Assembly: GCA_964188305.1 (NCBI GenBank)
Contig: OZ076893.1
Length of the DNA: 64,000 nt
DNA from: Podarcis bocagei
Lineage: Eukaryota
Reading direction: 5' to 3' (one strand)
Under the pieces are notes generated by a model. That model was not told where the DNA came from. It saw only the letters and a list, made by a program, of their open reading frames with translations, and made no database searches. The translations under genes and the position numbers were made by a program. Positions 14,001 to 62,499 of this stretch are shown here, one piece after another; within the stretch, counting starts at the first letter, position 1, and each line of letters starts with the position of its first letter.

Positions 14001-14464
14001 AATGTGGTTGCCAATGTAATGAACCTACCAGTACATCCCATGGTAAACACACCCTCAAAAATAAAAAATGCATAAGAGAACTTCTTGCCCTTCCTCCCAA
14101 GTTAATGTTGACACTGGATTTGCCTCTCTTTCTCTCCTCTGCCAACAGCCATTTTGTGTCATGCCACACGCCCCATGGCAGCCATTTTGTGATTGGCACC
14201 ATAGCAGTTTCTCAAAATTCCAAATGTCCTCATTGGTCCAAAAAGGTTGGACCAATCTGAATATAAATGCTTAAGAGCAGGCTGAAATGCCATAGACCTC
14301 ACATTTAGGCCTCATGCTGTTTTAGGCATAACCTATATAAGCTTTTCTGCCTTCCTTCTGTTGCCCAAATCTGTCTCTGTACATGACAAGAGTGTGCAGC
14401 ATAACATTCTTAATTCTTCTCTAAATGCCAGTCATCATTGTCTGTAAAACATGGATTTTAAATC

Positions 14465-18404: not shown

Positions 18405-20073
18405 ATGGACCGCCTCACTGCAGCAAACAGTGCCTTTGCCCTCAATCTGTTCAAGAAGCTAAGTCAAAATGATAATACAGCGAACATGTTTTTTTCTCCT
18501 TTGAGCATTTCTGCTGCTTTGACGATGCTCTCTCTGGGGGCGGCAGGGAACACTGCAGCCCAAATGGCAAAGGTATATCCAGATAAATACTATTAAGGGG
18601 ATGGGGGAGCTTGACTTTTGACTCTTAAATGAGGCATGCATGGTGCATCCTTTTCTTTGCAGCAGGTCAGGCTGAAATATGCATTTATTAGCGGGCCCTT
18701 AAGGCTACTAGTGAACTCCCGTTGCGCGGTCCCTGCTCCTGCCCACCTAGCTGTTCCAAAGCACGTCAAAATGCAAGTAAATAAATAGGTACCACTCCGG
18801 CAGGAAGGTAAACAGCGTTTCCGTGCGCTCTGCTGGTTTCACCAGAAGTGGCTTAGTCATGCTGGCCACATGACCTGGAAAAACTATCTGCGGACAAACA
18901 ACTCTGGGGTTGCGGTGCTCATCTTGCTTTACTGGCTGAGGGAGCCAACGTACAGCTTCCGGCTCATGTGGCCAGCGTGACTAAGCCGCTTCTGGCGAAC
19001 CAGAGCAGCACATGGAAATGCCGTTTACCTTCCCGCCGGAGCGGTACCTATTTATCTACTTGCACTTTGACGTGCTTTTGAACTGCTAGGTTGGCAGGAG
19101 CAGGGACCGAGCAACAGGAGCTCACCCAGTCACAGGGATTCGAACTGCTGACCTTTCACTCTCTTGTTTGCCAAAAGACGTGGATTTTCAACTGATAACA
19201 TGTTTTTTAGGATTACGTGGAGGCGGTTGGAGGATGGATGGCGGCTAACAGATTGAGGTTGAATCCTGACAAGACAGAAGTACTGTTTTTGGGGGACAGG
19301 AGGCGGGCAGGTGTAGAGGATTCCCTGGTCCTGAATGGGGTAACTGTGCCCCTGAAGGACCAGGTGCGCAGCCTGGGAGTCATTTTGGACTCACAGCTGT
19401 CCATGGAGGCACAGGTCAAATCTGCGTCCAGGGCAGCTGTTTACCAGCTCCATCTGGTACGTAGGCTGAGACCCTATCTGCCTGCGGACTGTCTCGCCAG
19501 AGTGGTGCATGCTCTGGTTATCTCCCGCTTGGACTACTGCAATGCACTCTACGTGGGGCTACCTTTGAAGATGACCCGGAAACTGCAATTAATCCAGAAT
19601 GCAGCAGCTAGACCGGTGACTGGGAGTGGCCGCCGAGACCATATAACACCGGTCTTGAAAGACCTGCATTGGCTCCCAGTACGTTTCCGAGCACAATTCA
19701 AAGTGTTGGTGCTGACCTTTAAAGCCCTAAACGGCCTCGGTCCAGTATATCTGAAGGAGCGTCTCCACCCCCATCATTCTGCCCGGACGCTGAGGTCCAG
19801 CGCCGAGGGCCTTCTGGCGGTTCCCTCATTGCGAGAAGCAAAGCTACAGGGAACCAGGCAGAGGGCCTTCTCGGTAGTGGCGCCCGCCCTGTGGAACGCC
19901 CTTCCAGCAGATGTCAAAGCGATAAACAACCACCTGACATTCAGGAGACATCTTAAGGCAGCCCTGTTCAGGGAAGTTTTTAACGTGTGATATTTTATTG
20001 TATTTTTGGTTTTTATGGAAGCCGCCCAGAGTGGCTGGGGAGGCCCAGCCAGATGGGCGGGGTATAAATAATA

Positions 20074-20127
<54 letters not shown>

Positions 20128-23100
20128 CTGTATTTAAATTACTTAACATTATCTGTTAACCATTTATCATCTTACAGGTGCTGTCTGTGACCAACGACGT
20201 CGAGTTTCACCAGGGATACGAGAAACTTATTTCTGAAATCAACAAGCCAGACACCAAGTACTTGCTTAGGCTAGCCAACAGGCTCTTTGGAGAAACATCC
20301 TATGAGTTTATTTCAGTAAGTTACATGGTTTACAAATATGCTAGAGAACAGGAAGTGGTCTCTGTTCAGATAGTGAACCGTGTTCTGTCGCAGATCAGAA
20401 ACGCAGCTAAGCACACACTATCCCTTCTGTACTTTCCAGTAAAACCTTCCATCAAACTGAAAGGGACATTTGAATTCGCAGCAGTGATCAGCTTGAGTCC
20501 AGGTGGCAGGTTGTACCAGCCAATCTACTTGGTGGATAGATTCATTTCTTTCTCTTTCCCCCTGTCCTTACTTGGCACCACTCGCACTGGATGCTTTTTG
20601 TAAGCTGCTCTTGTAAAGCTCCAAAACTGCAGGGTAGCTAATGCTGGATCATAACATTCTTTGTTTGGGAAAAGAGACTGCTTATGGGATGTTGGATCCC
20701 AAAGCACCCTTTTGTTTCTAGCATGTTGGCTCATGAATTTGGTCTAGCCTGCCCAGCCTTTTACAGAGGTCTGCCAACCCCCAAAACCATTGTTGACAGA
20801 AGCTTCAGAGGCAGTGAGCAGCAGATCAGAGTGCTCTCCATTTTGGTGACTTGCTTCCCCAGCAAGAAGCAGAATGAAGTACTCAGGAAATGGGAGGGAA
20901 TGCGACTACATTTTCTGAGCTCTTGACTATCTGCAGCCTGTGCTTCTCTCCTTCTCTCATTCGCATTTTTTTTTATATTGTGTAAATGATGGCATTGCAC
21001 TGGAAGGCAATTTCCCTTAGCATTTGCACGGGAGTTCACAGACCAGCACTACTGCATTTCCCACTGTGTGTTACATTTATGACATGCTTGTGAACTTCCA
21101 GGGACAGAACGGTAGACTAAGTGGAGCTTTTGCTAGATCAAGCCAAGAGGATAATTACATTTAAAAAACAACTGTAATACAACAGGTAGATGCGGTGGCG
21201 CAGCGGCAGCAGGAGGCCCCATTAACTAAAGTGATGCTTCAGGTTAAGAACAGTTTCAGGTTAAGAACGGACCTCCGGAATGAATTAAGTACATAACCCG
21301 AGGTACCACTGTACATTTTTAAAAGAACAACTGTAATATAGCAGGTAGTCGGCACTTTCCAAAGACTTACCAAATTTGGGGACGAATAAGTATTGCTTAA
21401 ATAACAGTTTTACTCCATAGAGAAACAGAAAGAGAAAATACCACATTGGAATTCATTATCCGCCTGCATTGAGCAGGATTGATACGGGGCAAATATTGGT
21501 AAGCATTTAGCATCCTGCATACAGACCTTTCATGTAGGACTCTCATATACAGTGGTACCTCGGGTTAAGTACTTAATTCGTTCCGGAGGTCCATTCTTAA
21601 CCTGAAACTGTTCTTAACATGAGGTACTACTTTAGCTAGTGGGGACTCTTACTGCTGCCGTGCTGCCGGAGCACGATTTCTGTTCTCAACCTGAAGCAAA
21701 GTTCTTAACCTGAAGCACTATTTCTGGGTTAGCAGAGTGTGTAACCTGAAGCGTATGTAACCTGAAGCGTATGTAACCCGAGGTACCACTGTATAAGAAT
21801 AAGACAATGATTGCTATGTGTATTCTTGAGCAAAAGAAGTTTGTTTGGGTCCGGTTCAGTCCATCTGTTTTGGCTGATAGGAATCTATTGCACATGCCAT
21901 GACCTTTTTCTTATCAACTGAAGTTAAATTAAGCATCTGCATACGTGTTTCACATCTTTCGGTATCTGAAAATGGAAGAAACATCCTTCTCTCCCTCTCT
22001 TTTCTGTGGGACAAAACCTGAATGAAATCAAAGTTTGTTTGTATATGATATATACAGATCCATATATAGCTTTTAATTCTGAAACATATTTGTTTAAGTC
22101 ATTCATAGACTCCAGCCAGAAATTCTATCGAGCAGGTCTAGAGAAACTAGACTTCATTAAAGCATCAGAGGATTCCAGAAAATACATTAATAATTGGGTG
22201 GAAGAACAGACAGCAAGTGAGTAGCAAATTCTTGGGCTTCCATATTGTCTGAGGTTTAGTTCTTAAAATATGAGTTTGTGTCTAAAAAATATGTACTTAT
22301 TAAAACAGCTCTTTAATCCCTCTTCAAGGTAAAATCCAAAATCTGCTCACCCCAGGACTAATTGACTCCAGTACAAGGCTGGTCTTGGTGAATGCTATCT
22401 ATTTCAAGGGAAACTGGGCAAATCAGTTCCTCAAAGATGACACTGAGGAAAGGCCGTTCAAAGTTAGCAAGGTATGAGGTGGGAAATAATGTGAAGAACA
22501 TCACTGAGCACAGTCTTTATCATTTTGATTACATACACACATTCTGATATTTGGAGTGTTCCCTCCTTCTGTTTTTTTCTTTCATCAGTTGACCAGTTGG
22601 GATTTCCCTTCCCACCATGTCCTAAGGACATTCTTTTGCAGAGATAACAGAGGATGAACAGTACACAAGGTGCAGAGCAGCTCAAGCAATGCAATAGAAA
22701 AGATTACATGCTTAAAACGAAATTCTTCTCCGTTTGCAGAATGAAAGCAAACCGGTGCAGATGATGTTCAAGGAAGCTAAATTCAACATGACATACATAT
22801 CGGAACTTCGCACCCAAATTCTTGAGATTCCTTATGTTGATAACGAGCTCAGCATGATCATCCTGCTTCCTGATGAGATTGCAGATAATTCTACAGGCCT
22901 GGAAAAGGTGAGGCATTTTTGATAAGAATAAAACCATCTAAATTCTTGCCCGTAAAAATTGCCCTTGTATGACGAGAGCATTCTAGCTTCCAACTTCTAA
23001 GTGATTCTTCCAAGTGCCCAGTGTAACTTATTATATTGTTGGCATCTGTCTGTCTTGAGAGACAATGGAGTGTGCCTTCAGAGGTGAAGTCAAACCACCA

Positions 23101-26100
23101 TGCTAGCAGCGCCGAAATGACCTCCTTGGGGTCAGTGCCGAATTTACGTATAAGCTAAACAAGCTGTAGCTTAGGGTCCCACTATTTTGGGGGCCCCCCC
23201 CCCCAAATATGTAAGGGGAAAAAAACCTAGATGTACTTTTCCAAAATATAAGATAAAAAACAAATAAAATAAAACCTACACATAGCAACAGTGTTTTGTG
23301 TTGTATAGGCTCCTATAATGTAAGTAATGCGTCCCGCCTGCCAGCCTGCTCCCTAAAATATCACTGGTTTGCTCATTTCTATGTATGTGGTGCCTGCATT
23401 CTGCATGTGCAAATAGCTTTAGATACCTTTTAGGTCCATAAATTACTATACTGGAGAATTTCCTTCATTCTTTCAGCTAAAATATAGGTATACAATTTAT
23501 AAACATTGTTCAACATGCTGACAGCTTCTAGGAGACACAGGTGAGAGCCGAGTACAGGGTGGGGGAACCAAAGGTGGATAAATTACCCCAGAAGGAGCAA
23601 TATAGCTGTTTATATTTCTATAAGCATAGTTAAGTCTGCCAGTGTTCTGTCTTATTCAGAAAGATGGAAGGCATAAAAGCAAGTTGAGCAGAAAGGAATT
23701 CTACCCGGACAGACAGGGCAATTGTAAAACAAGTTTACCGTATTTTTCGCCCTATAGGACGCACCGGCCCATAGGATGCACCTAGATTTTTTGGGGGGGG
23801 AATAAAGGGAAAAAAATTATTTCCCCCCCCCCAGGCGCAGGGCTGGGGCGGGAGAAGCCCGAGCTTCCCCCGACCCCAGCCCCCAGAATGGGAGCCAGAG
23901 CGATGCCAAAGGTGAGCGCACCGGCATCGCTCTGGGACCTTGCGCGGCTGGGGGCGGGGGGAGCTGGAGCTTCCCCCGACCCCAGCCCCCCGAACGGGTT
24001 GGAGAGCGATGGCGAAGGTGCTCGCACCTTCGGCATCACTCTGGGACCTTGCGCGGCTGGGGGCGGGGGGAGCCGGAGCTTCCCCAGTCCCCAGAGCAGG
24101 TCCGAGAGTGCTGGCGAAGGTGAGCGCACCTTCGCCATCACTCCCAGAGCTTGCGGGGCTGGGGGTGGGGGAAGCCCAAGCTGGGGGTGGGGGAGGTTGA
24201 GCCGCGCAAAGTCCCAGAGCGATGGCGAAGGTGCGCGCACCTTCGGCATCGCTCTCCGACCCGTTCGCCGGGCTGGGGACGGGGAAAACTCCGGCTCCCC
24301 CCGCCCCCAGCCGCGCAAGCTCCGAGAGCGATGGCGAACGTGCGCGCACCATCGCCATCGCTCTCTGACCTGTTCTGGGGGCTGCGGTCGGGGGAAGCTC
24401 CGGCTTCCCCCGCCCCCAGCCGCGCAAGCTCCGAGAGCGATGGCGAACGTGCGCGCACCTTCGGCATCGCTCTCCGACCCGTTCGCGGGGCTGGGGACGG
24501 AGGAAACTCCGGCTTCCCCCACCCCCAGCCCCGCAAGCTCTGGGAGTGATGGCGAAGGTGCGCTCACCTTTGCCATTGCTCCCGGAGCTTGCAGGGGCTG
24601 GGGGTGGTGGAAGCCCGAGCTTCCCCCGCCCCCAGTCCCCAGAGCAGGTCGGAGAGCACTGGCGAAGGTGCGCGCACGTTCGCCATCGCTCTCGGAGCTT
24701 GCGCGGCTGGGGGCGGGGGAAGCCGGAGCTTCCCCCGACCGCAGCCCCCAGAACAGGTCAGAGAGCGATGGCGATGGTGCGCGCACGTTCGCCATCGCTC
24801 TCGGAGCTTGCGCGGCTGGGGGCGGGGGGAGCCGGAGTTTTCCCCGTCCCCAGCACGGCGAACGGGTCGGAGAGCGATGGCGATGGTGCGCGCACCTTCG
24901 CCATCGCTCTGGGACTTTGCGCGGCTCGACCTCCCCCACCCCCAGCTTGGGCTTCCCCCAGTCCCCAGAGCAGGTCCGAGAGTGCTGGCGAAGGTGAGCG
25001 CACCTTCGCCATCACTCCCAGAGCTTGCGGGGCTGGGGGTGGGGGAAGCCCAAGCTGGGGGTGGGGGAGGTCGAGCCGCGCAAAGTCCCAGAGCGATGGC
25101 GAAGGTGCGCGCACCTTCGGCATCGCTCTCCGACCCGTTCGCCGGGCTGGGGACGGGGAAAACTCCGGCTCCCCCCGCCCCCAGCCGCGCAAGCTCCGAG
25201 AGCAATGGCGAACGTGCGCGCACCTTCGGCATCGCTCTCCGACCCGTTCGCGGGGCTGGGGACGGAGGAAACTCCGGCTTCCCCCACCCCCAGCCCCGCA
25301 AGCTCTGGGAGTGATGGCGAAGGTGCGCTCACCTTTGCCATTGCTCCCGGAGCTTGCAGGGGCTGGGGGTGGTGGAAGCCCGAGCTTCCCCCGCCCCCAG
25401 TCCCCAGAGCAGGTCGGAGAGCGCTGGCGAAGGTGAGCGCACCTTCGCCATCACTCCCAGAGCTTGCGGGGCTGGGGGTGGGGGAAGCCGGAGTTTCCCC
25501 AGCCCCCAGAACAGGTCAGAGAGCGATGGCGATGGTGCACGCACCTTCGGCATCGCTCTGGGACCTTGCGCGGCTGGGGGGATAGCTTCCTGAAGCCTGG
25601 AGAGCTGGGGGGGGGGAGTGCGTCCTATAGGGCGAAAAATACGGTAAGTGATGTACATGGAGTCATTTGAGTCACTGTGGATCCAGTGAAAATGGTTTTA
25701 TGTAAGAAATGTGAGGATTTATATATGCAGCCAGGATTTCCTTTTTTCCTTGAATGCCTTGTATTTGTCTTATTTTAGCTGGAGAAAGAAATGACCTATG
25801 AGAAACTCAAGGATTGGATTAACCCTGAGAAGATGGACCTAACTGAAGTTCAGCTGTCTCTACCCAAATTTAAACTGGAGGAAAAATACGACCTGAAGCC
25901 TGTTCTGAGCAGCATGGGAATGGCTGAGGCGTTTGACCCAAGCAAGGCGGATTTCTCCAAGATGTCTCCCAACAATGACTTGGTTTTGTCAGAGGTTGTT
26001 CACAAATCCTTTGTAGAGGTAAACGAAGAGGGAACTGAGGCTGCTGCTGCTACTGCTCCTGTTATGAATTTCCTGTGTTATAATTTTGTGCTGAGTTTCA

Positions 26101-26183
26101 CAGCCGACCATCCCTTTCTCTTCCTCATTCGGCACAACAAAACACAAAGCCTTCTCTTCTATGGTAGGTTTTGCTCTCCCTGA
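18405..26183 (+). CDS. SERPINB6: SERPINB6-like paralogue A (379 aa; RCL ...APVMNFL|CYNFV)
   Basis: Exons 18405-18572, 20178-20315, 22099-22216, 22329-22471, 22740-22907, 25779-26183; open frame, no CD-loop exon, C-terminus GRFCSP; near-identical to copy C outside the RCL. Confidence 0.88.
18712..18900 (+). mobile_element. Sauria SINE fragment
   Basis: Similar to 278-627; same position as the fuller copy at 43256. Confidence 0.8.
18901..19155 (-). mobile_element. Sauria SINE fragment, inverted
   Basis: Reverse complement of the SINE body. Confidence 0.85.
19217..20122 (+). mobile_element. Young 5'-truncated L2-clade LINE (RT C-terminal region intact)
   Basis: 257-aa stop-free ORF with [41 protein letters not shown]; (TAT)n tail; absent from copies B and C. 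Confidence 0.9.
21550..21791. mobile_element. Tc1/mariner (Tigger-like) MITE, copy A only; a partial inverted copy lies at ~21190-21311
   Basis: TIR CAGTGGTACCTCGGGTTA, TA TSD; empty site CTCTCATATATAAGAATAAG in copy B. Confidence 0.85.
23738..25644. mobile_element. 1.9-kb non-autonomous Tc1/mariner-superfamily element filled with a palindromic ~109-bp minisatellite
   Basis: Perfect TIR CCGTATTTTTCGCCCTATAGGACGCAC, TA TSD (23736-37 / 25645-46); empty site in copies B and C; 16 palindromic cores inside. Confidence 0.88.
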
Positions 26184-26185
26184 AG

Positions 26186-26402
26186 CAAGCTAACTTCTCA
26201 GGAATGTCAAAGAAAAGTGACTTGGCTTTGTCAGAGGTGTATCACAAGTCCTTTGTGGAGATCAATGAAGAGGGCATTGAGGCAGCAGCTGCCTCAGCAG
26301 CCACCGTTGTAATAAGGTCATCTCAGCATCCCATAAAATTAGAAGCAAACCACCCTTTCATCTTCAAGCACCCTCTTCTTTGGCAGATTCTCTTTGCCAT
26401 AG
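26186..26402 (+). pseudogene. Duplicated 3' half of the SERPINB10-like last exon fused directly after the copy A stop codon
   Basis: Homologous to 13761-14000 ([30 protein letters not shown]); no splice acceptor; hinge T->I; 12-nt plus 11-nt deletions (frameshift); followed by a copy of the SERPINB10-like 3' UTR. Confidence 0.9.
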
Positions 26403-28759
26403 AATGGGGTTGCTGATGCAATGAACCCACTGGTACCTCCCATGGTAAACACACTCTCAAAAATAAAAAATGCATAAGACAACTTCCTGCCCTTCCTGCT
26501 AATTTAATGTTGACACTGGCTTTGCCTTTCTTTCTCTCCTCTGCCAACAGCCATTTTGTGTCAGACCACACGCCCCATGGCAGCCATTTTGTGACTGGCG
26601 CCCATAGCAGTTTCTCAAAATTCCACATTTCCTCATTGGTCCAAAAAGTTTGGCAATCTGAGTATAAATGCTTAGGAGCAGGCTGATATACCACAGGCAT
26701 CACATTGAGGCCTAATGCTGTTTTAGACATAACCTATATAAGCTTTTCTGCCTTCCTTCTGTTACCCAAATCTGTCTCTGTACATGACAAGTGTGCAGCA
26801 TCACATTCTTAATTCTTCTCTAAATGCCGGTCATTATTGTCTGTAAAACATGCATTTTAAAGCAAGAAATGTAGTTTTGAAACTTATGTTTCCACTGTGA
26901 AAACAGTGCAGCCCACTTGCATTAAAATAATTGACAACACTCCTGTTTGTTTGTTTGTTTATTTATTTTATATATTCATCATCTCACCAACTGGTTAGTA
27001 CAAAGAAAGAGCAATTAGACGGAACCTGTTCCAAACTGGAGGATATATTCCGGACCAGTTGGGATAGAATGGGAAATGCATGCAAAATCCAGAGGCTTCT
27101 GGGAGAACGTCATTTGACAAGTTCTAATTGAGTCAAGTCTCTGCTCTTCAGAAATGGTTAATGTTCCTATACGTATTTTCTTCAAGTGTCGTGATCTGAG
27201 TTCTCCTTTTGCATCACTGATAGGCACATTCTGGTACCTCTGTTTCCTCACGGCTTGCTTGCATTTCAGGCATTAGAAGTTTGCTCTCTGCATTTATGCA
27301 CCAGCTGTCCGTTATGCTTAACCTTACTCAGTTGCAACACAGCATCACCAGGGTCAGAATCCTAACTGGTACCCGTCCTCGTTTCCCAATAGCAATGGTC
27401 TTAGAAACTATAGCAGGATCTCCTTCTCAGGCCTCAACATGGTTCTAACAGGGCATCATAATCTCACCCAGGTAGTCTGACCTTTGTTTTAAGCATCGTA
27501 GTTGTGTGTATTGGGCAACAAATTGAAGGCATGAATACGTTTATAACCCAGGTTCCCCACATGGTTATAATAATTTATTATTTATACCCCGCCCATCTGG
27601 CTGGGTTTCCCCAGCCACTCTGGGCGGCTTCCAAAAGAATATTAAAATACTATGATACATCAAACATTAAAAGCTTCCCTAAACAGGGCTGCCTTCAGAT
27701 GTCTTCTAAAAGTCTGGTAGTTGTTGTTCTCTGGTCGCTTTCAGTAGATCAAATGGTGTCCCGCCGTGCTTTCATTTGAAGAGATGGGACTCCCTCAACA
27801 CTCCTCATAAACACACTCTTATGGGCAGGACACCCAAATCCCAACACTTCTCCGGAATAGTCCACAGATTAATCACCACATACCCAGAGATTCCTCTGAA
27901 CTGTACAAGCTTACCCAATCTTTCCGGAGAATATTGCAGTCATCAAAAAATCAGACTGGATGTTCACATCCTTCCCCCAGCATGTCCGGGAAAAAACAAC
28001 AACACTCAGTATGGCCAGAAATATTCAAGCCTGCATATCTAGAATATACACCTCAAAGGAGCTGATTTCACCCAAAGGTCATAGTGGTTCCTTGGTTTAC
28101 AGAAGTACGTGCGTCGTCTCTTTTTTCAGGTTGTATTTTCTAGGGATCAATTCCATTTGTTGCGAGACATTCATGTTCGTAAAATAACCCAAGGCTCCCC
28201 GCACGCACAACCTCTCTCACTACCAAGGAAATGCAATAAATCAGTGTTATGTATTGAGTTTAACACATTTTATGTTACAAGGCGCATTCTAACCAATCAC
28301 AGAAGCGTTGGTAGATGAACACTTAGCTGTCAACCTTCCCTTTTTTTGCGGGAAATTCCCTTATTCCAACGCCGTTTCCCGCTGCTATCCCGGATTGTTA
28401 GATATCCCATAGACTGTCCCCTGGACTGGTGAGGCTGCTGATCCCTTATTTTCTAATCTGACAGCTATGGACCTGCGTTCTAATGGCAAGTAAGCACATG
28501 CTCTTTCAACTGTCAAACTGTCAACGGTCAGTTTATCCTCGGCATTATTATCGTGTTGTCCAGTCAGTTTGGTTCTTGTGTTCCTATGAGTGAGCTGTTG
28601 TCACTGACAAATGCTGAATAAACTTACACTGCCTTGGGCTTCTGACTTCTTCCGAACATTTAACAATCAGCGAATAGAAAGAGGATCTATCCAAACGACG
28701 CCGACACTAAGTAAAAGAATATGAGCTTTACCCTATAAACTGCATTGTCTGTATTAATG

Positions 28760-29300: not shown

Positions 29301-29875
29301 GAAATGCGGTGGGTCCTGATGTTGTCTGGGACTTCCTTTGGTGAGGAAGTAATTAATCTGGGAGGGTCTCAGGGTGTTGTCACCTGTGGGACCTGCACTT
29401 CTGTGCACACTTCTGTCCTTTGAACAGCTGCACGACACAGGCAGAAATTTAATAGCTGCGGCTTTCCATACTGTGTTTCTCTACCAAAGTTGTTGAGCTT
29501 TCTTTTTAGGATTGAAGTTGCTGAGCATTTTTTTTTTTTTTTTGGATTTTACCCCAGGACAGAAGGGGCTGAATTAAACCCCCGAACCAGACTTTGGACA
29601 TGCCTGCCCTAATATTGGTAGAAGGAGTTTTGAAAGATTTGTACATCTTAGTGCCAGTAGTCACAATATAGTTATAAAAGCATCAAACAGGACTTCATGC
29701 AAGCTTGATCCCGTTCAGGACACGGTTTATCAAACATAGACTTAATTGCGAAAGTCAGGCTATTATAGCTGTTGGCTTGCTAACTTAATTCTGCGGCCTG
29801 AGGCTTTAATAGTCCTGTTTTTGAGGCTAGAATTATGCAGTGGGGAGGGACAACAGGCTCTCAAATGATGCTTTA

Positions 29876-30120
29876 CAGTGGTATCTCGGGTTACATACAC
29901 TTCAGGTTACATACGCTACAGGTTACAGACTCCGCTAACCCAGAAATAGTACCTCGGGTTAAGAACTTTGCTTCAGGATGAGAACAGAAATAGTGCAGCG
30001 GCGGCGGCACGGCAGCAGCAGGAGGCTCCATTAGCTAAAGTGGTGCTTCAGGTTAAGAACAGTTTCAGGTTAAGAACGGATCTCCGGGATGAATTAAGTA
30101 CTTAACCCGAAGTACCACTG
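29876..30120. mobile_element. Tc1/mariner (Tigger-like) MITE
   Basis: Same family as 21550, opposite orientation, TA flanks. Confidence 0.8.
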
Positions 30121-30515
30121 TATGTCCCAAAGGGGGTAATGTGGCATATAAGATGCAATAGACTTTTAATTTAAAGCTGATCTTCTTAGAAATCAAGTGA
30201 GGGCAAATTACTGTCTGCTGGGCATTTTTGCAAATTACTGTCTGCTGGCCATTGCTTTCATCTAAAGAAATGTAGCATGTGATTGACGGATCCTCTGTGG
30301 GCTGCAGCCTCCCCCACACCAGAAAACGGTGGGTGGGTGGCATTTTGGAGAGCATGAAAATGTTCCAGCATGGGAATTACAGGTTGATATGCATTTGGAT
30401 ACGTGTGGGATCTGAAAACAAATGCTTAGGTTTGGGTTTTTTCTTGTAAAAGTGACCTCCGAGCGGATAAACTGGATGACTGTCTTCTCTGTGCTTGTTT
30501 CGTAGGTTATAAGAC

Positions 30516-33500
30516 ATGGACCGCCTCACTGCAGCAAACAGTGCCTTTGCCCTCAATCTGTTCAAGAAGCTAAGTCAAAATGATAATACAGCGAACGTGT
30601 TTTTTTCTCCTTTGAGCATTTCTTCTGCTTTGACGATGGTCTCTCTGGGTGCGGCAGGGAGCACTGCAGCCCAAATGGCAAAGGTATATCCAGATAAATA
30701 CTATTAAGGGGAGGGGGGAGCTTGACTTTTGCCTCCATGCATGGTGCTTCCTTTTCTTTGTAGCAGGTCAGGCTGAAATATGCATTTACAGTATTTCACT
30801 CTCTTGTTTGCTGAAAGGCATGGATTTTTCAACTAATACAGTTTTTAAGGAGTACGTAGATAAATGTATTTAAATTACTGCACTTAACATTATCTGTTAA
30901 CCATTTATTGTCTTACAGGTGCTGTCTGTGACCAACGACGTCGAGTTTCACCAGGGATACGAGAAACTTATTTCTGAAATCAACAAGCCAGACACCAAGT
31001 ACTTGCTTAGGCTAGCCAACAGGCTCTTTGGAGAAACATCCTATGAGTTTATTTCAGTAAGTTACATGGTTTACAAATATGCTAGAGAAGAGGAAGTGGT
31101 CTCTGTTCAGATAGTGAACCGTGTTCTGTCACAGATCAGAAACGCAGCTAAGCACTCACTATCCCTTCTGTACTTTCCAGTAAAACCTTCCATCAAACTG
31201 AAAGGGACATTTGAATTCGCAGCAGTGATCAGCTTGAGTCCAGGTGGCAGGTTGTACCAGCCAATCTACTTGGTGGATAGATTCATTTCTTTCTCTTTTC
31301 CCCTGTCCTTACTTGGCACCAGGACATTAGCTGGGATAATAATAATATTTATTATTTATACCCTGCCCATATGGCTGGGTTTCCCCAGGCACTCTATGCA
31401 GCTCCCAGCAGAACATTAAAACAGAAGAAAACTACAAACATTAAAAACTTCCCTAAACAGGTCTGCCTTCAGATGTTTCTAAATTCTAAAAGTCATATAG
31501 TTGCTTATTTCCTTGACATCTGATGGAAGGGCATTCCAAAGGGCGGACTCCACTACCAAGAAGGCCCTCTGCCTGGTTCCCTGTAGCTTAGCTTCTCGCA
31601 GGGAGGGAACCACCGGAAGGCCCTTAGCGTCCGGGCTGAATAATGGGGGTGGAGACGCTCCTTCAACTATACAGAGCCGAGGCTTTTTAGGGCTTTAAAG
31701 GTCAGCTCCAACACTTTTGACTTGTGCATGGAAATATACTGGGAACCAATGTAGGTCTTTCAGGACGGGTGTTATACTGTCTCGTCGGCCACTCTGAAGA
31801 TGCACCTCTTTACCCTATGGCCTATGTGTTTTCAGGACCCAGGCCATTGCTGTGACTTTTTAATATATGTAATACGTACAGAATTTTAAATTGTTGTAAT
31901 CTGTCATGGGACCTGGAAGGCAAAGTCCCCCAGCGTTTGCACAAAGAGTTCACAGACCAGCACTGCTGCATTTCCCCATCTGTTTATGGGCCTTTGAATC
32001 CAGGCCATTATAGAGAAATGTGTGTTAATTTTATGACATGCTTGTGAGCTTCCAGGGACAGAATGTTAGACTAAGAGGAGCTTTTCCTAGATCAAGCCAA
32101 GAGGATAATTACATTAAAAAAACAACTGTAATACAACAGGTAGTTGGCACTTTCCAAAGAGTAACCAAATTTGGAGACAAATAAGTATTGCTTACGTAAC
32201 GTTTTTTCCTCCATAGAGGAATGGAAAGAAAAAACACCACATTGGAATTCATTATCCGCCTGCATTGAGCAGGATTGATACAGGGGCAAATCTTGGTAAG
32301 CATTTAGCATCCTGCAAATGGACCTTTCATGTAGGACTCTCATATATAAGAATAAGACAAGGATTGCTATGTATATTCTTGAGCAAAAGAAGTTTGTTTG
32401 GGTCAGGTTCAGTTTATCTGTTTTGGCTGATAGGAATCTATTGCACATGCCATGAGCTTTTTCTTATCAACTGAAGTTAAATTAAGCATCTGCATACGTG
32501 TTTCACATCTTTCGGTATCTGAAAATGGAAGAAACATCCTTCTCTCCCTCTCTTTTCTGTGGGACAAAACCTGAATGAAATCAAAGTTTGTGTGTATATG
32601 ATATATACAGATCCATATATAGCTTTTAATTCTGAAACTTATTTGTTTAAGTCATTCATAGACTCCAGCCAGAAATTCTATCGAGCAGGTCTAGAGAAAC
32701 TAGACTTCATAAAAGCATCAGAGGATTCCAGGAAATACATTAATAATTGGGTGGAAGAACAGACAGCAAGTGAGTAGCAAATTCTTGGGCTTCCATATTG
32801 TCTGAGTTTTACTTCTTAAAATATGAGTTTGTGTCTGAAAAATATGTTCTTTAATCCCTCTTCAAGGTAAAATCCAAAATCTGCTCGCCCCAGGAATAAT
32901 TGACTCCAGTACAAGGCTGGTCTTGGTGAATGCTATCTATTTCAAGGGAAACTGGGCAAATCAGTTCCGCAAAGATCTCACTGAGGAAACGCCGTTCAAA
33001 ATTAGCAAGGTATGAGGTGGGAAATAATGTGAAGCACATCACTGAGCAAAGAGTCTTTATCGTTTTGATTAAATTACATACATTGTGATATTTGGAGTGT
33101 TCCCTCCTTCTGTTTTTTTTCTTTCATCAGTTGACCAAGTAGGATTTACCTTCCCACCATGTCCTAAGGACATTCTTTTGCAGAGACAACAGAGGATGAA
33201 CAGTAAACAAGGTGCAGAGCAGCTCAAGCAATGCAATAGAAAAGATTATATGCTTAAAACAAAATTCTTCTCCATTTGCAGAATGAAAGCAAACCAGTGC
33301 AGATGATGTTCAAGAAAGCTAAATTCAACATGACATGGATATCGGAACTTCGCACCAAAATTCTTGAGATTCCTTATGTTGAAAACGAGCTCAGCATGAT
33401 CATCCTGCTTCCTGATGAGATTGCAGATAATTCTACAGGCCTGGAAAAGGTGAGGCATTGTTGCTGAGAATAAAACCATCTAAATTCTTGCCCATAAAAA

Positions 33501-34839
33501 TTGCCCTTGTTGGTACATGACCAGAGCATTCTAGCTTCCAACTTCTACGTGATTCTTCCAAGTGCCCAGTGTAACTTATTATATTGTTGGCATCTGTCTC
33601 AAGAGACAATGGAGTGTGCCTTCAGAGGTGAAGTCAAACCACCATGCTAGCAGCGCCGAAATGACCTCCTTGGGGTCAGTGCCGAATTTACGTATAAGCT
33701 AAACAAGCTATAGCTTAGGGTCCCACTATTTTGGCCCCCCCCAAAAAAAAAATGTAAGGGGAAAAAACCCTAGATGTACATTTCCAAAATATAAGATAAA
33801 AAACAAATAAAATAAAACCTACACATAGCAACAGTGTTTTGTGTTGTATAGGCTCCTGTAATGTAAATAATGGGTCCTGCCTGCCAGCCTGCTCCCTAAA
33901 ATATCACTGGTTTGCTCATTTCTATATATATGGTGCCTGCATTCTGCATGTGCAAATGGCTTTAGATACCTTTTAGGTCCATTACTATACTGTATAATAG
34001 TTTGGAGAATTTTCTTAATTCTTTCAGCTAAAATATAGGTATACAATTTATAAACATTGTTCAACATGCTGACAGCTTCTAGGAGCCACAGGTGAGAGCT
34101 GAGTACAGGGTGGGGGGAACCAAAGGTGGATAAATTACCCCAGAAGGAGCAATATATGTTTAATATAGTGGTTATATTTCTATAAGCATAGTTAAGTCTG
34201 CCAGTGTTCTGTCCTATTCAGAAAGATGGAAGGCATAAAAGCAAGTTGAGCAGAAAGGAATTCTACCCGGACAGACAGTGCAATTGTGAAACAAGTTTGT
34301 TTAAGTGATGTACATGGAGTCATTTGAGTCACTGTGGATCCAGTGAAAATGGTTTTATGTAAGAAATGTGAGGATTTATATATGCAGCCAGGATTTCCTT
34401 TTTCCTTGAATGCCTTGTGTTTGTCTTATTTTAGCTGGAGAGAGAAATGACCTATGAGAAACTGAAGGATTGGATTAACCCTGAGAAGATGGACCTAACT
34501 GAAGTTCAGCTGTCTCTACCCAAATTTAAACTGGAGGAAAAATACGACCTGAAGCCTGTTCTGAGCAGCATGGGAATGGCTGAGGCGTTTGACCCAAGCA
34601 AGGCAGATTTCTCCAGCATGTCTCCCAACAATGACTTGGTTTTGTCTGAGGTTGTTCACAAATCCTTTGTAGAGGTAAATGAAGAGGGAACTGAGGCTGC
34701 TGCTGCTACTGCTGCTGTAATGACTAAGCGGCGTGCTAGGATTGTGCCCTGTGTCACAGCCGACCATCCCTTTCTCTTCTTCATTCGGCACAACAAAACA
34801 CAAAGCCTTCTCTTCTATGGTAGGTTTTGCTCTCCCTGA
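30516..34839 (+). CDS. SERPINB6: SERPINB6-like paralogue B (379 aa; RCL ...AAVMTKR|RARIV)
   Basis: Exons 30516-30683, 30919-31056, 32652-32769, 32867-33009, 33282-33449, 34435-34839; intact frame and splice sites. Confidence 0.88.
31337..31795 (-). mobile_element. L2 LINE 3' fragment
   Basis: Degenerate reverse complement of ~19620-20080. Confidence 0.75.
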
Positions 34840-34841
34840 AG

Positions 34842-35069
34842 CAAGCTAACTTCTCAGGAATGTCTAAGAAAAGTGACTTGGCTTTGTCAGAGGTGTATCA
34901 CAAGTCCTTTGTGGAGATCAATGAAGAGGGCATTGAGGCAGCAACTGCCTCAGCAGCCACCGTTGTAATAAGGTCATCTCAGCATCCCATAAAATTAGAA
35001 GCAAACCACCCTTTCATCTTCAAGGCAACAAAAAGCACCCTCTTCGTTGGCAGATTCTCTTTGTCATAG
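34842..35069 (+). pseudogene. Duplicated 3' half of the SERPINB10-like last exon fused directly after the copy B stop codon
   Basis: Same junction (CCCTGAagCAAGCTAAC), same hinge T->I change and same 12-nt deletion as the fragment at 26186. Confidence 0.9.
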
Positions 35070-37304
35070 AATGGGGTTGCCAGTGCAGTGAACATACTGG
35101 TACCTCCCATGGTAAACACACTCTCAAAAATAAAAAATGCATAAGAGAACTTCCTGCCAAGTTACTGTTGACACCAGCTTTGCTTCTCTTTCTCTCCTCT
35201 GCCAACAGCCATTTTGTGTCATGCCACACGCCCCATGGCAGCCATTTTGTGACTGGCGCCCATAGCAGTTTCTCAAAATTCCAAATTTCCTCATTGTTCC
35301 AAAAAGGTTGGCAATCTGAATATAAATGCTTAGGAGCAGGCTGAAATACCACAGGCATCACATTGAGGCCTAATGCTGTTTTAGACATTATCTCTATAAG
35401 CTTTTCTGCCTTCCTTCTGTTGCCCAAATCTGTCTCTGTACAAAAGTGTGCAGCATCACATTCTTAATTCTTCTCTAAATGCTAGTCATCATTGTCTGTA
35501 AAACATGCATTTTAAAGCAAGAAATGTAGTTTTGAAAATTATGTTTCCACTGTGCAAAACAGTAGTTTTTTAAAGCTCTTATCTTCTCTCCCTGTGCCAC
35601 ATGACACGGAGTGCAGCCCACTTGCATTAAAATAATTGACAGCACTCTATTTATTTATTTTATATATTCATCATCTCACCAGCTGGTTAGTACAAAGAAA
35701 GAGCAATTAGACAGAACCTGTTCCAAACTGGAGGATATATTCCGGACCAGTTGGGATAGTATGGAAAATGCATGCAAAATCCAGAGGCTTCTTGGAGAAC
35801 GTCCTTTGACAAGTTCTAATTGAGTCAAGTCTCTGCTCTGCAGAAATGGTTAATGTTCCTATACGTATTTTCTTCAAGTGTCGTGTTCTGAGTTCTCCTT
35901 CTGCATCACTGATAGGCACATTCTGGTACCTCTGTTTCCTCACGGCTCGCTTGCATTTCAGGCATTAGAAGTTCACCCTCTGCATTTATGCACCAACTGT
36001 CCATTATGCTTAACCTTACTCAGTTGCAACACAGCATCACCAGGGTCAGAATCCTAACTGGTACCCGTCCTCGTTTCCCAATAGCAATGGTCTTAGAAAC
36101 TATAGCAGGATCTCCTTCTCAGGCCTCAACATGGTTTTAACAGGGCATCATAATCTCACCCAGGTAGTCTGACCTTTGTTTTAAGCATCGTAGTTGTGTG
36201 TATTGGGCAACAAATTGAAGGCATGGATATCATTTATTACCCAGGTTCCCCACATGGTTAACAACAATCTGGTCACTTTCAGTAGATCAAATGGTGTCCC
36301 GCCGTGCTTTCATTTGAAGAGATGGGACTCCTTCAACACTCCTCATAAACACACTCTTATGGGCAGGACACCCAAATCCCAACACTTCTCCGGAATAGTC
36401 CACAGATTAATCACCACATACCCAGAGATTCCTCTGAACTGTACAAGCTTACCCAATCTTTCTGGAGAATATTGCAGTCATCAAAAAATCAGACTGGATG
36501 TTCACATCCTTCCCCCAGCATGTCCGGGAAAAAAAACACAACAACACTCACTATGCCCAGAAAGATTCAAGCCTGCATATCTATATCATACACCTCAAAG
36601 TGATCTCACCCTAAGATCATAGTGGTTCCTTGGTTTACAGAAGTACGTGCGTCGTCTCTTTTTTCTGGTTGAATTTGTTGCTGGACATTTGTGCTGTTGG
36701 GATAACCTTAGGCTCCCCGCACACACAACCTCTCTCACTACCAAGGAAATGCAATAAATCAATGTTATGTATTGGGTTTAACACATTTTATGTTACAAGG
36801 CACGTTCTAACCAATCATATAGTGTTTGTAGATGAACACTTAGCTGTCAACCTTCCCTTTTTTGCGGGAAATTCCCTTATTCCAGCACCATTTCCCGCTG
36901 CTATCCCGAATTGTTAGATATGCCGTAGACTGTCCCCGGGACAGGTGAAGCTGCTGATCTCTTATTTTCGAGGCTGCTGATCCCTTATTTTCAAATCTGA
37001 AAGTTGACAGCTATGGGCGAACGTTCTAATGGCAAGTAAGCGCATGCTCTTTCAACTGTCAAACTGTCAACAGTCAGTTCATCCTCGGCATTATTATCGT
37101 GTTGTCCAGTCAGTTTGGTTCTTGTGTTCCTATGAGTGAGCTGTTGTCACTGACAAATGCTGAATAAACTTACACAGCCTTGGGCTTCTGACTTTTTCCG
37201 AACATTTAACGATCAGCGAATAGAAAGAGGATCTATCCAAGCGACGCCGACACTAAGTAAAAGAATATGAGCTTTACTCTATAAACTGCATTGTCTGTAT
37301 TAAT

Positions 37305-41426: not shown

Positions 41427-42948
41427 TCTTTAGAATGTTAGAATTATTTTTTAAAGGAATCAGGATAAACAAAGGCCGGCTGACACCAACTCTGCAGGAT
41501 CAGTGCTCTTTTCAAGTCAGTGGCATCAAGCACCACATTGTGGATTGTGTCGCAGTATGTTTACAGGCTGGCTTCTTGACGTGAAGCAGAGAGTTTTCCA
41601 CAACTGTACTTTTCTGTGGGAAATATTCCGTGCCCAAAAATGCGTTGTTTCATACAGTGAATTAGCATTCTAAATAATGAATACAAGAGATAGCTTTTCC
41701 TCTTTGTCTAGAATAAAGAGATGACCTGCGGTGACTTGAAATTGGCAGTGTGGTAACTAAACAAACCTCCTGAGTAATCCTGATATTAGGTTGCTAAGTT
41801 TATACCCTTATGTATTTTAATTACACTGAATCCTCAGCCATGTCGTATGGTAAAAAATATTATATATAACAGATGTGTTGTATAGCTTTTCTTACCTGCT
41901 TAACCCTGTCTGTATGAGAGTTGTGTATTTCCCTGACTGCTAATGTTTTGCAGAGAGATCAGAGCCATTTGGGATCGCTTCCCTAAGGATTTTTTTCTGT
42001 GCCTTTAAATAGGTTCACAGCTTGGAGCAGTTCTGAAGGCTTCGCTTTCCTTTCCTTTCCCCTGTGATGGAAGAAAAAGCACATGCCAAAATTCTGGTTT
42101 TAAATAACAAGGAAATGTGTGCTAGCTTGGCAAGAGTGCTGTGTGTTTTGTTTTGTTTTGTTTTGTTTTGTTTTGTTTCAAAAACAAGAAAACCTGGGCT
42201 TGGCAGCTCTGCCAGCCAGAAAAAAAATGGCAGAGTTCCTGTGTCTCTGAACCTCCAAGACAGATAAATCCAGCAGGCGAAGCTTGTCCCATTGGATCTT
42301 CATGCCAGGAAAATGTTCAGATGTGAATTTCATGGGGCTGGGTTGATTTAGTGTGCCCAGTATCAAACAGGACTTAATGCAAACTTGATCCCGTTCAGGA
42401 CTCAGTTTATCAAACATAGACTTAATTGCGAAAGTCAGGCTATTATAGCTGTTGGCTTGCTAACTTAATTCTGCGACCTGAGGCTTTAATAGTCCTGTTT
42501 TTGAGGCTAGAATTATGCAGTGGGGAGGGACAACAGGCTCTCAAATGATGCTTTCCCTCCCTCTATGTCTTTTTATGTCCCAAAGCGGGTAATGTTGCAT
42601 GTAAGATGCAATAGACTTTTAATTTAAAGCTGATCTTCTTAGAAATCAAGTGAAGGCGAATGTTATTCTCATCCTGGGCATCTAAAGAAATGTAGCATGT
42701 GATTGACGGTTCCTCTGAGGGCTGCAGGCCCCCCCCCCCACACACACCAGAAAACGGTGGGTGGGTGGCCTTTGGGAGAGCATTAAAATGTTCCAGCTTG
42801 GGACTTGCAGGTTGATATGCCCTTAGGACACATGTGTGGGATCTGAAAACAAATGTTTATTTTTGTTTTGTTTTTCTTGTAAAAGTGACCTCCGAGCGGA
42901 CAAACTGGATGACTGTCTTCTCTGTGCTTGTTTCGTAGGTTATAAGAC

Positions 42949-45900: not shown

Positions 45901-48362
45901 GATAGGAATCTATTGCACATGCCATGAGCTTTTTCTTATCAACTGAAGTTAAATTAAGCATCTGCATATGTGTTTCACATCTTTCGGTATCTGAAAATGG
46001 AAGAAACATCCTTCTCTCCCTCTCTTTTCTGTGGAACAAAACCTGAATGAAATCAAAGTTTGTGTGTATATGATATATATAGATTATATATAGCTTTTAA
46101 TTCTGAAACATATTTGTTTAAGTCATTTGTAGACTCCAGCCAGAAATTCTATCGAGCAGGTCTAGAGAAACTAGACTTCATTAAAGCATCAGAGGATTCC
46201 AGGAAATACATTAATAATTGGGTGGAAGAACAGACAGCAAGTGAGTAGCAAATTCTTGGGCTTCCATATTGTCTGAGTTTTACTTCTTAAAATATGAGTT
46301 TGTGTCTAAAAAATATGTTCTTATTAAAAAAGCTCTTTAATCCCTCTTCAAGGTAAAATCCAAAATCTGCTCGCCCCAGGACTAATTGACTCCAGTACAA
46401 GGCTGGTCTTGGTGAATGCTATCTATTTCAAGGGAAACTGGGCAAATCAGTTCCGCAAAGATCACACACAGGAAAGGCCGTTCAAAATTAGCAAGGTATG
46501 AGGTGGGAAATAATGTGAAGCACATCACTGAGCAAACAGTCTTTATCGTTTTGATTAAATACACACATTCTGATATTTGGAGTGTTCCCTCCTTCTGTTT
46601 TTTTCTTTCATCAGTTGACCAGCTAGGATTTCCCTTCCCACCATGTCCTAAGGACATTCTTTTGCAGAGACAACAGAGGATGAACAGTAAACAAGGTGCA
46701 GAGCAGCTCAAGCAATAGAAAAGATTATATGCTTAAAACGAAATTCTTCTCCATTTGCAGAATGAAAGCAAACCGGTGCAGATGATGTTCAAGAAAGCTA
46801 AATTCAACATGACATGGATATCGGAACTTCGCACCAAAATTCTTGAGATTCCTTATGTTGATAACGAGCTCAGCATGATCATCCTGCTTCCTGATGAGAT
46901 TGCAGATAATTCTACAGGCCTGGAAAAGGTGAGGCATTTTTGATAAGAATAAAACCATCTAAATTCTTGCCCGTAAAAATTGCCCTTGTTGGTCGCTGTA
47001 CACGACAAGAGAAAGATTATTCCAGCTTCTACGTGATTCTTCCAAGTGCCCAGTGTAACATGTTACATTGTTGGCATTTGTCTGTCTTGAGAGAGAATGG
47101 AGTGTGCCTCCAGGGGTGAAGTCAAACCACCATGCCAGCAGCGCCAAAGTGACCTCCCTGGGGTGTTAACCTGGGCAGTGTGTATAGACATCTTGGGCTG
47201 CCCAGACATGTTTGGCACCAGTTTGGCTGCAGGAGTTGCTGGAAAGAGGCGTGCAAGGCACCATCCAAGCATCTTGGGGACTCCATTCTGGATTTGTATA
47301 GAGTCTACTCCTTAGCCTTTCTTCTCCTGAAGTTATCCTGCAAGACAGTGGAGGTTTAGGATCAGAATTTCCCTTCTCCTAGATGGGCTACTTTCCCAGG
47401 TGATTAGCTGCATTTGCCCTTCATTTCCCTCTACAGCACTAACTGCCTTCTCGACCATTGCACCCACTATGGTCTTCTCCACTCAATCTGCCAGAGCCTA
47501 TATTTGCATGCAGGGCAAGTCCCTAACACACTGAGGGTTTGAGACCCATTGGCTACCCTCGCCTGATTTAGCCGGCCAGTCAAAGACATTTCCCAGATTG
47601 TGGCTTCTAGGAGCCACAGGTGAGAGCTGCGTGCAGGGTAGGAACCAAAGGTGGTTAAACTACCCCAGAAGGAGCAATATATGTGTAATATAGCTGTTTA
47701 TATTTCTATAAGCATAGTTAAGTCTGCCAGCATTCTGTCTTGTTCAGAAAGATGGAAGGCATAAAAGCAAGTTGAGCAGAAAGGAATTCTACCCGGACAG
47801 ACAGGGTAATTGTGAAACAAGTTTAATTGATGTACATGGAGTCATTTGACTCACCGAGAATCCAGTGAAAATGGTTTTATGTAAGAATTTTGAGGATTTT
47901 TATATGCAGCCAGGATTTCCTTTTTTCCTTGAATGCCTTGTGTTTGTCGTCTTTTAGCTGGAGAGAGAAATGACCTATGAGAAACTCAAGGATTGGATTA
48001 ACCCTGAGATGATGGACCTAACTGAAGTTCAGCTGTTTCTACCCAAATTTAAACTGGAGGAAAAATACGACCTGAAGCCTGTTCTGAGCAGCATGGGAAT
48101 GGCTGAGGCGTTTGACCCAAGCAAGGCAGATTTCTCCAGCATGTCTCCCAACAATGACTTGGTTTTGTCTGAGGTTGTTCACAAATCCTTTGTAGAGGTA
48201 AATGAAGAGGGAACTGAGGCTGCTGCTGCTACTGCTGCTGTTATGATGCTGCGGTGTGCTAGGATTGTGCCCTGTGTCACAGCCGACCATCCCTTTCTCT
48301 TCTTCATTCGGCACAACAAAACACAAAGCCTTCTCTTCTATGGTAGGTTTTGCTCTCCCTGA
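42949..48362 (+). CDS. SERPINB6: SERPINB6 canonical-type copy C (379 aa; RCL ...AAVMMLR|CARIV)
   Basis: Exons 42949-43116, 45483-45620, 46123-46240, 46353-46495, 46761-46928, 47958-48362. RCL MMLRCAR matches the mammalian SERPINB6 pattern (MMMRCAR). Has its own unique 3' UTR with AATAAA at 48741 and 49273. Confidence 0.92.
43256..43573 (+). mobile_element. Sauria SINE
   Basis: GGGACGCGGGTGGCGCTGTGGGTTAAACC head and SINE body. Confidence 0.88.
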
Positions 48363-61751: not shown

Positions 61752-62082
61752 TTTGACATCCACAACATCCTGGGATCCAGCAACACAGTTCTAAAAGCAT
61801 ACACTTCGTTGGTCTATGAGGGGTAGATGAGACGAGGCTGCTTTACAATTTGCATCCCACTCGCCATCCAGATCCTGGATTTCAGCTTCCTACATAGCAA
61901 CCCAGTACAGTGCTTTGGACTGTACAACATTTATCCACATCATTGGTGCTAAGATTCCCACTGTTGATTCCCTCTTCCTCTCCCCCAACTATCTGCCAGA
62001 TTATTTTCTGATAGGTAATAGTTGCTGAAAGAGCCTGTCAAGAGCAAAAAATATAAAGTATTCTTGTATTCAGATCCATTTA

Positions 62083-62324
62083 CAGTGGTACCTCGGGTTA
62101 AGTACTTAATTCGTTCTGGAGGTCCGTTCTTAACCTGAAACTGTTCTTAACCTGAGGTACCACTTTAGCTAATAGGGCCTCCCATTGCCGCCGCGCCGCC
62201 GGAGCACGATTTCTGTTCTCATCCTGAAGCAAAGTTCTTAACCCGAGGTACTATTTCTGGGTTAGCAGAGTCTGTAACCTGAAGCATATGTAACCTGAAG
62301 CGTATGTAACCCAATGTACCGCTG
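62083..62324. mobile_element. Tc1/mariner (Tigger-like) MITE
   Basis: Near-identical to 21550-21791. Confidence 0.85.
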
Positions 62325-62499
62325 TATGCTATTGAAAAACGTTTGCACCCAACCCCCCGTCAGGAAGAAATTCCTAATAAGCACATTCCCTTATCCATCA
62401 CAGGCATGTGCATCTTGTCTCTGAGGTTGGTGAATAATGCCAGGAACAGGTAGGTAGCCGTGTTGGTCTGATGCAGTCGAAATAAAAATTAAAAAAATA

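Follow-up and report, generated by a model that had tools for sequence, protein, structure and literature searches.

The window, by which we mean the whole 64,000-nucleotide stretch of Podarcis bocagei DNA that was analysed, is free of N runs and contains a cluster of clade-B serpin genes, all on the same strand. Comparison of the window against itself (tblastn and tblastx) located five serpin last exons: those of a SERPINB10-like gene (gene D), of three copies of a SERPINB6-like gene (copies A, B, and C), and of a SERPINB1-like gene (gene E; Table 1). Coding-exon positions are identical in all five genes, with six coding exons in each. In copy B, the gene of main interest here, the six exons span positions 30516-34839, all with canonical AG/GT boundaries, and encode 379 amino acids in a coding sequence of 1140 nt with no internal stop. 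Copies A and C have exons of the same lengths and are likewise intact.

Together the six exons of copy B tile positions 2-370 of the 370-position Pfam Serpin profile (PF00079) without a gap. The match runs from residue 7 to the last residue of the protein, leaving no N- or C-terminal extensions. The first 11 residues are charged and weakly hydrophobic, with no cleavable signal peptide apparent, a judgement based on the start of the profile match and on N-terminal composition. Genes of the seven-exon clade-B (ov-serpin) type have conserved intron positions (PMC1308813); copy B agrees with this type, and with its linkage to SERPINB1, on its six coding exons, that is, for the coding part of the gene. 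The solved structures nearest to copy B are those of leukocyte elastase inhibitor, PAI-2, and MENT, all of clade B.

Table 1. Features of the serpin cluster in the window; positions are those of the window, and the arrow, here as in the text, marks the scissile bond
Feature	Position	Strand	Basis and remarks
Gene D, SERPINB10-like	ends ~13998	same as other cluster genes	tblastn/tblastx self-comparison of the window
Copy A, last exon	25779-26183	+	Comparator; 14-residue loop differing from those of B and C
Copy B, first coding exon (Met1-Lys56)	30516-30683	+	ATG start, GT donor; Pfam Serpin 2-51
Copy B, second coding exon	30919-31056	+	AG/GT boundaries, phase 0; Serpin profile 58-97
Copy B, third coding exon	32652-32769	+	Serpin profile 100-136; joint 32769>32867 in 28 RNA reads
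Copy B, fourth coding exon	32867-33009	+	Serpin profile 139-183; joint 33009>33282 in 29 RNA reads
Copy B, fifth coding exon	33282-33449	+	Serpin profile 186-237; joint 33449>34435 in 76 RNA reads
Copy B, last coding exon (reactive-centre loop and stop)	34435-34839	+	Serpin profile 237-370, E = 2e-48; TGA at 34837-34839
Copy B, hinge P15-P8, G-T-E-A-A-A-A-T (Gly330-Thr337)	34687-34710	+	Same in copies A, B, and C; shared by nearly all fetched SERPINB6-like proteins
Copy B, P4-P4′, M-T-K-R↓R-A-R-I	34720-34743	+	Met341 is P4
Copy B, P3 Thr342	34723-34725	+	
Copy B, P2 Lys343	34726-34728	+	
Copy B, P1 Arg344	34729-34731	+	
Copy B, P1′ Arg345	34732-34734	+	
Copy B, 3′ UTR from last-exon fragment of SERPINB10-like gene D	34842-35070	+	Serpin profile 292-367, E = 2.5e-18
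Copy C, last exon	47958-48362	+	Comparator with ancestral SERPINB6 loop V-M-M-L-R↓C-A-R; P4-P4′ at 48243-48266
Gene E, SERPINB1-like	~54.5-61.0 kb, ending ~61037	same as cluster	Self-comparison of the window

Upstream of the start codon of copy B, a 196-nt block (29679-29874) is 96.9% identical to one upstream of copy C (42359-42554) and is absent upstream of copy A; it could represent a promoter or a non-coding first exon. In copy B the block is followed by a 250-nt repeat insertion (29874-30123), further copies of which lie at 62081-62326, 21547-21793, and 2813-3056. Intron 6 of copy B holds a very high-copy repeat (33510-34146) with a contig word depth about 10 to 3000 times that of its flanks in three DNA runs; RNA reads with loose ends at 33948 and 33982 fall inside it.

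Downstream, the gene is chimeric. The fragment that forms its 3′ UTR matches gene D at 13761-14096 (tblastx), and it also follows the copy B orthologue in Podarcis muralis and P. raffonei (14699-14920 of L001 and 15129-15350 of L002, the loci of these two species), so the chimeric junction is older than the splits between those species. The fragment begins about 90 nt past the stop codon in P. raffonei and directly after it in the window. A D-derived fragment is likewise found near copy A (26186-26500).

The reactive-centre loop of copy B

Positions 34681-34760 (80 bases) are in frame within the last exon of copy B and encode 26 residues. P1 was assigned to Arg344 by counting from P15 Gly330, a register that coincides with the conserved Arg↓Cys bond of 231 SERPINB6-like homologues. 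The small residues that characterize a serpin hinge are present (Gly at P15, Thr at P14, Ala at P12-P9), and the loop is as long as in copy C and in the 231 homologues. A preliminary description of this locus had reported five substitutions relative to copy C and an intact inhibitory hinge; both observations were confirmed. Codons 342-345 read ACT AAG CGG CGT in copy B (34723-34734) and ATG CTG CGG TGT in copy C (48246-48257), with the five nucleotide differences in codons 342, 343, and 345 and an additional synonymous difference in codon 340 (GTA in copy B, GTT in copy C). Over the entire coding sequence the two copies differ at 22 of 1140 positions, 5 of which are contained in a single 12-nt span (permutation p = 0.0005). 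No donor from which the T-K-R-R stretch could have been copied by gene conversion was found in the window, where the 21-mer occurs once even with 3 mismatches allowed.

The signature loop of SERPINB6, M-M/L-R↓C-A, is present in copy C and absent from copy B, which reads M-T-K-R↓R-A; copy B is therefore a SERPINB6 paralogue and not a functional orthologue. The loop also contains a minimal R-X-X-R (R344-R-A-R347), three residues off the canonical scissile bond. Copy C has its equivalent (R-C-A-R), as do many SERPINB6 loops, so this motif is not what changed in copy B. The two caveats voiced in the preliminary description, that P4 is Met and that the downstream R-X-X-R is shared with copy C, were thus well placed: Met341 occupies P4 in the canonical register.

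The comparison set of 231 fetched SERPINB6-like proteins illustrates how unusual this loop is. P1 is Arg in 165 of them and P1′ is Cys in 190, and a basic P1 combined with a basic P1′ was found in none of the 231. A dibasic P2-P1 pair occurs in five, three of which are Podarcis orthologues of copy B.

History of the loop within Podarcis

When the last exon alone was used as the query (134 aa), the matches were fragments of 74-236 aa, the best of them 79% identical (birds, turtles) and none from a close relative. Full-length relatives were reached by a profile of a 224-aa turtle fragment, as the lead sequence, and exons 5-7 of the window. The best full-length matches were serpin B6 or B6-like proteins of P. 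muralis and P. raffonei, followed by those of Zootoca and Rhineura, with turtles and birds also represented. The loop type V-M-M-L/M-R↓C-A is standard for SERPINB6 in birds, turtles, squamates, fish, and mammals.

Orthologues of copy B were recovered from P. muralis (P0121, 370 of 379 residues identical, and P0122) and P. raffonei (P0123, 364 of 379); the three are 96-98% identical to it in protein. P0121 and P0123 share the loop A-V-M-N-K-R↓C-A-R-I-V-P-C-V. A second P. raffonei protein (P0124) is identical to copy C at 366 of 379 residues and has the loop M-M-L-R↓C-A-M. In both species the gene order is D, B-type, C-type, and in either syntenic locus D is followed by B with no counterpart of copy A in between. 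At the DNA level, the stretch is GTT ATG AAT AAG CGG TGT in P. muralis and P. raffonei and GTA ATG ACT AAG CGG CGT in the window; the changes specific to the window's own branch are AAT to ACT (Asn to Thr at P3), TGT to CGT (Cys to Arg at P1′), and the silent GTT to GTA. Since the orthologues of both relatives read N-K-R↓C, the loop changed in two stages, in which the P2 Lys is old and the Asn to Thr and Cys to Arg replacements are recent. The preliminary description had attributed the Lys-Arg pair, the P1′ Arg, and the loss of the P1′ Cys to five substitutions; the residues are as it claimed, but five is a pairwise count between copies and does not describe one event. Judged from these sequences, N-K-R↓C reads as the genus-wide state of the Podarcis B lineage.

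Contigs and reads of four sequencing runs, from organisms coded A, C, and E, were compared with the window over positions 32600-35300. Coded organisms A and C yielded contigs with the window's letters at 34719, 34724, and 34732 and with no other letters at those sites; the contig pieces are 353 and 165 nt long and carry 3 and 2 other letters elsewhere. Coded organism E has T, A, and T at the three sites (GTT ATG AAT AAG CGG TGT). Eight sites of its last exon vary, among them these three, and the variants it shows there match P. muralis, one of them in only part of the contig depth. T-K-R-R is neither a private variant nor an assembly error, and it is not genus-wide. That the motif might be a private variant, which the preliminary description had named among the grounds for abandoning its proposal, was not borne out, the letters being present in the contigs of coded organisms A and C. 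The check it had named, conservation of K-R-R-A-R in related species, gave N-K-R-C in P. muralis, P. raffonei, and organism E. The T-K-R↓R form is found in the window's species and in these other sampled contigs, although coded organisms A and C may themselves belong to the window's species.

The age of the duplication that produced copies A and B was considered from a tree of the genomic stretch from exon 4 to exon 7, which is based on introns. Copies A and B and the two orthologues came out as a star without resolved branches, which places the A/B duplication at about the age of the species splits. An impression from BLAST identities that the duplication was older than the species split was not upheld by this tree.

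Selection, possible gene conversion, and transcription

Outside the loop, copies B and C differ with dN of 0.0117 and dS of 0.0261; within P4-P4′, dN is 0.30. Seven changes are unique to the branch of copy B, four of them synonymous and three replacements (N49S, N342T, and C345R). The eight codons of P4-P4′ account for two of these replacements (p = 0.0013). For the region outside the loop, omega on this branch is about 0.09; across estimates it ranges from about 0.09 to 0.45. Copy B is thus under purifying selection outside the loop, and its replacements cluster in P4-P4′; these selection tests are nonetheless weak, as few changes are available and the window's loop is just two replacements away from N-K-R↓C. 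After serpin duplication, positive selection concentrates on the reactive-centre loop, the body staying conserved while the bait changes fast (PMC12646145, PMC4136820), and copy B follows this classic pattern.

Five further changes on the copy B branch (codons 92, 126, 132, 306, and 333, within 30919-34698) match copy C and differ from both Podarcis orthologues, and the contig of coded organism A carries the state of copy A (AAG) at codon 306. These sites suggest patchy gene conversion among the copies that spared the loop. The exons of the copies are 98% alike and their introns about 88-94%, a difference which likewise suggests a homogenisation of exons that the loop escaped.

Transcription was evaluated in RNA run X24 of the P. 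muralis-like coded organism E. Reads crossed three splice joints (28, 29, and 76 reads; Table 1), most of them assignable to any of the paralogues. At least 4 reads, with three different start points, carried the B-type codons AAT AAG, which are absent from copies A and C. Reads with more than 3% mismatch were left out (97% identity threshold). Since the window and the P. muralis-like gene show six differences within 68 nt, the loop is under-counted in depth and the B-specific reads are few. Thirty-five RNA reads of this organism run off at 34840 into sequence of the copy C 3′ UTR; 3′ UTR reads do not separate copy A from copy B. The B orthologue is transcribed in this P. muralis-like relative of the window's species.

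Probable function and candidate targets

The closest system for comparison is vertebrate SERPINB6 (PI-6), represented in the window by copy C. Copy B resembles it in fold, in its length of 379 aa, in the six-coding-exon layout and intron phases, in hinge, loop length, and P1 Arg, and in its neighbourhood of adjoining SERPINB1-like and SERPINB10-like genes; copies B and C are 98% identical in coding DNA. The differences are Met-Leu or Met-Met at P3-P2 (Thr-Lys in copy B), Cys at P1′ (Arg in copy B), and the 3′ UTR that copy B derived from a SERPINB10-like exon. The orthologues in P. muralis (P0121, P0122) and P. raffonei (P0123) share with copy B the syntenic order D-B-C, the chimeric 3′ UTR, the P2 Lys, and the P1 Arg, but with M-N-K-R↓C-A-R they have Asn at P3 and lack the P1′ Arg.

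We consider it probable that copy B is a working, Podarcis-specific SERPINB6 paralogue, an intracellular inhibitory clade-B serpin that would trap Arg-specific proteases with a shifted subsite preference. It would present its reactive-centre loop as bait, and a protease cutting after P1 Arg344 would stay covalently bound while the loop inserts into beta-sheet A; we infer this suicide-substrate mechanism because fold, hinge, and loop length are intact. Following duplication the bait would have shifted in two steps: from M-M/L-R↓C to N-K-R↓C, the form common to the B orthologues of P. muralis and P. raffonei, and from there to T-K-R↓R, the form of the window's species, with letters also seen in coded organisms A and C. 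As P1 has stayed Arg, copy B most likely remains a trap for Arg-specific (trypsin-like) serine proteases entering the cytosol, and its preference would have moved towards enzymes that accept a basic P2 and P1′. A basic P1′, unusual among serpin baits, could steer the reaction to the substrate pathway at the expense of a stable complex. Loss of the P1′ Cys may also have removed an oxidative off-switch, by analogy with SERPINB9, which is inactivated by oxidation of its redox-sensitive loop cysteines (PMC11222584).

The preferred candidate target, proposed with low confidence, would be a granzyme A/K-type granule tryptase, a guess made because a mouse Serpinb6 paralogue took on that role. Mouse Serpinb6b, part of the Serpinb6a-e expansion, specifically inhibits the Arg/Lys-specific granule protease granzyme A (PMC6971054, PMC3880077), a new target for the Serpinb6 line. 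Like copy B it is a lineage-specific tandem duplicate of Serpinb6, although it arose by an independent duplication in rodents. KLK8, a known target of SERPINB6, was considered and rejected: it prefers an aliphatic P2 and a small P1′ (PMC6048020), so copy B has moved away from it. A further resemblance, to human SERPINB2 (PAI-2; PDB 2arq_A), is probably coincidental: in an ungapped comparison V-M-T-G-R of PAI-2 aligns with V-M-T-K-R at P5-P1 of copy B (34717-34731), with Gly instead of Lys at P2 and, beyond the bond, Thr instead of Arg at P1′.

The preliminary description had gone further and proposed that copy B inhibits furin or the prohormone convertases PC1/3 and PC2, by convergence with human SERPINB8 (PI-8). 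SERPINB8 is indeed comparable: it is intracellular and belongs to clade B, has Arg at P1 and additional Arg around the scissile bond, lacks a signal peptide, as does copy B, and inhibits furin effectively (PMC9604144, PMC12528359), and Lys-Arg at P2-P1 is the classic convertase pair, with R344-R-A-R347 supplying the minimal R-X-X-R. The details of the loop make this proposal a conjecture that we regard as very unlikely. Serpins directed at furin, of the SERPINB8 or alpha1-PDX type, have Arg at both P4 and P1, and the determinant in SERPINB8 is R-N-S-R at P4-P1 within V-V-R-N-S-R at P6-P1 (PMC9604144), followed by Cys at P1′; copy B, a SERPINB6 duplicate and not a SERPINB8 orthologue, has Met341 at canonical P4 and Arg at P1′. 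Its R-X-X-R is both off the bond and ancestral, being present as R-C-A-R in copy C. Convertases work in the secretory lumen, and copy B has no N-terminal signal peptide or ER-retention signal. Finally, P. muralis and P. raffonei read K-R↓C, so any fit to convertases comes down to the P2 Lys alone. The other proposal made there, an antiviral decoy for a cytosolic dibasic viral protease such as flaviviral NS2B-NS3, we find scarcely credible. No viral partner is known for wall lizards, and nothing in the window ties copy B to infection. With no signal peptide copy B would share the cytosol with such an enzyme, and its Lys-Arg fits a protease that cuts after RR, RK, or KR pairs, but NS3 favours a small unbranched P1′, Ser or Gly (PMC2933675), and Arg is exactly what the newest change placed there. 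A cross-class role, with copy B guarding the cytosol after leakage of a lysosomal cysteine protease that accepts a basic P2 (cathepsin B type), also appears highly improbable. Copy B is cytosolic, papain-like cathepsins are inhibited by the clade-B serpins SERPINB3, B13, and MENT, and cathepsin B cleaves Arg-Arg substrates; the serpins known to inhibit cathepsins, however, have a hydrophobic P2. SERPINB3, B13, and MENT are listed as positive controls in PMC12528359, whereas SERPINB6-type proteins are known as inhibitors of serine proteases (PMC3880077, PMC6048020).

There is also the simpler reading that the loop changes are neutral, copy B being a redundant duplicate in which constraint on the loop has been relaxed and T-K-R↓R carrying no new function. 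It draws on the fact that the window's branch holds just two loop replacements, on the fragility of clustering tests with such small counts, and on neighbouring copy A, which shows that the cluster tolerates radical rewriting of a loop. We nonetheless think it unlikely: at least three genomes have an undamaged reading frame and undamaged splice sites, omega is about 0.09-0.45 outside the loop, the B orthologue is transcribed, loop differences persist in exons that are otherwise more alike than the introns, and the P1 Arg and hinge are unchanged. Also unlikely is a reading in which the series M-L-R↓C to N-K-R↓C to T-K-R↓R would record adaptive retargeting onto a protease that cuts at basic clusters, whether an enzyme of a pathogen or parasite or a granule tryptase of the lizard. 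Were retargeting true, the intermediate bait loops of Podarcis would form a natural series that can be dated, of use for studying how serpin specificity evolves, in which related wall lizards carry the successive intermediates (the copy C form, N-K-R↓C, and T-K-R↓R) with a rewritten copy A beside them. Such a series would be suited to testing how single substitutions shift specificity, and whether redox control is lost with the P1′ Cys. With regard to the family as a whole, copy B is an ordinary case of the known hypervariability of serpin loops after tandem duplication, a new paralogue state within a known family.

Copy A (18405-26183) provides a further example in the same cluster; its loop was rewritten very fast. 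Its intron 6 contains an insertion of about 1.9 kb (23738-25644) that is absent from copies B and C and from the Podarcis orthologues and that sits in a stretch of 65% G+C (24001-26000).
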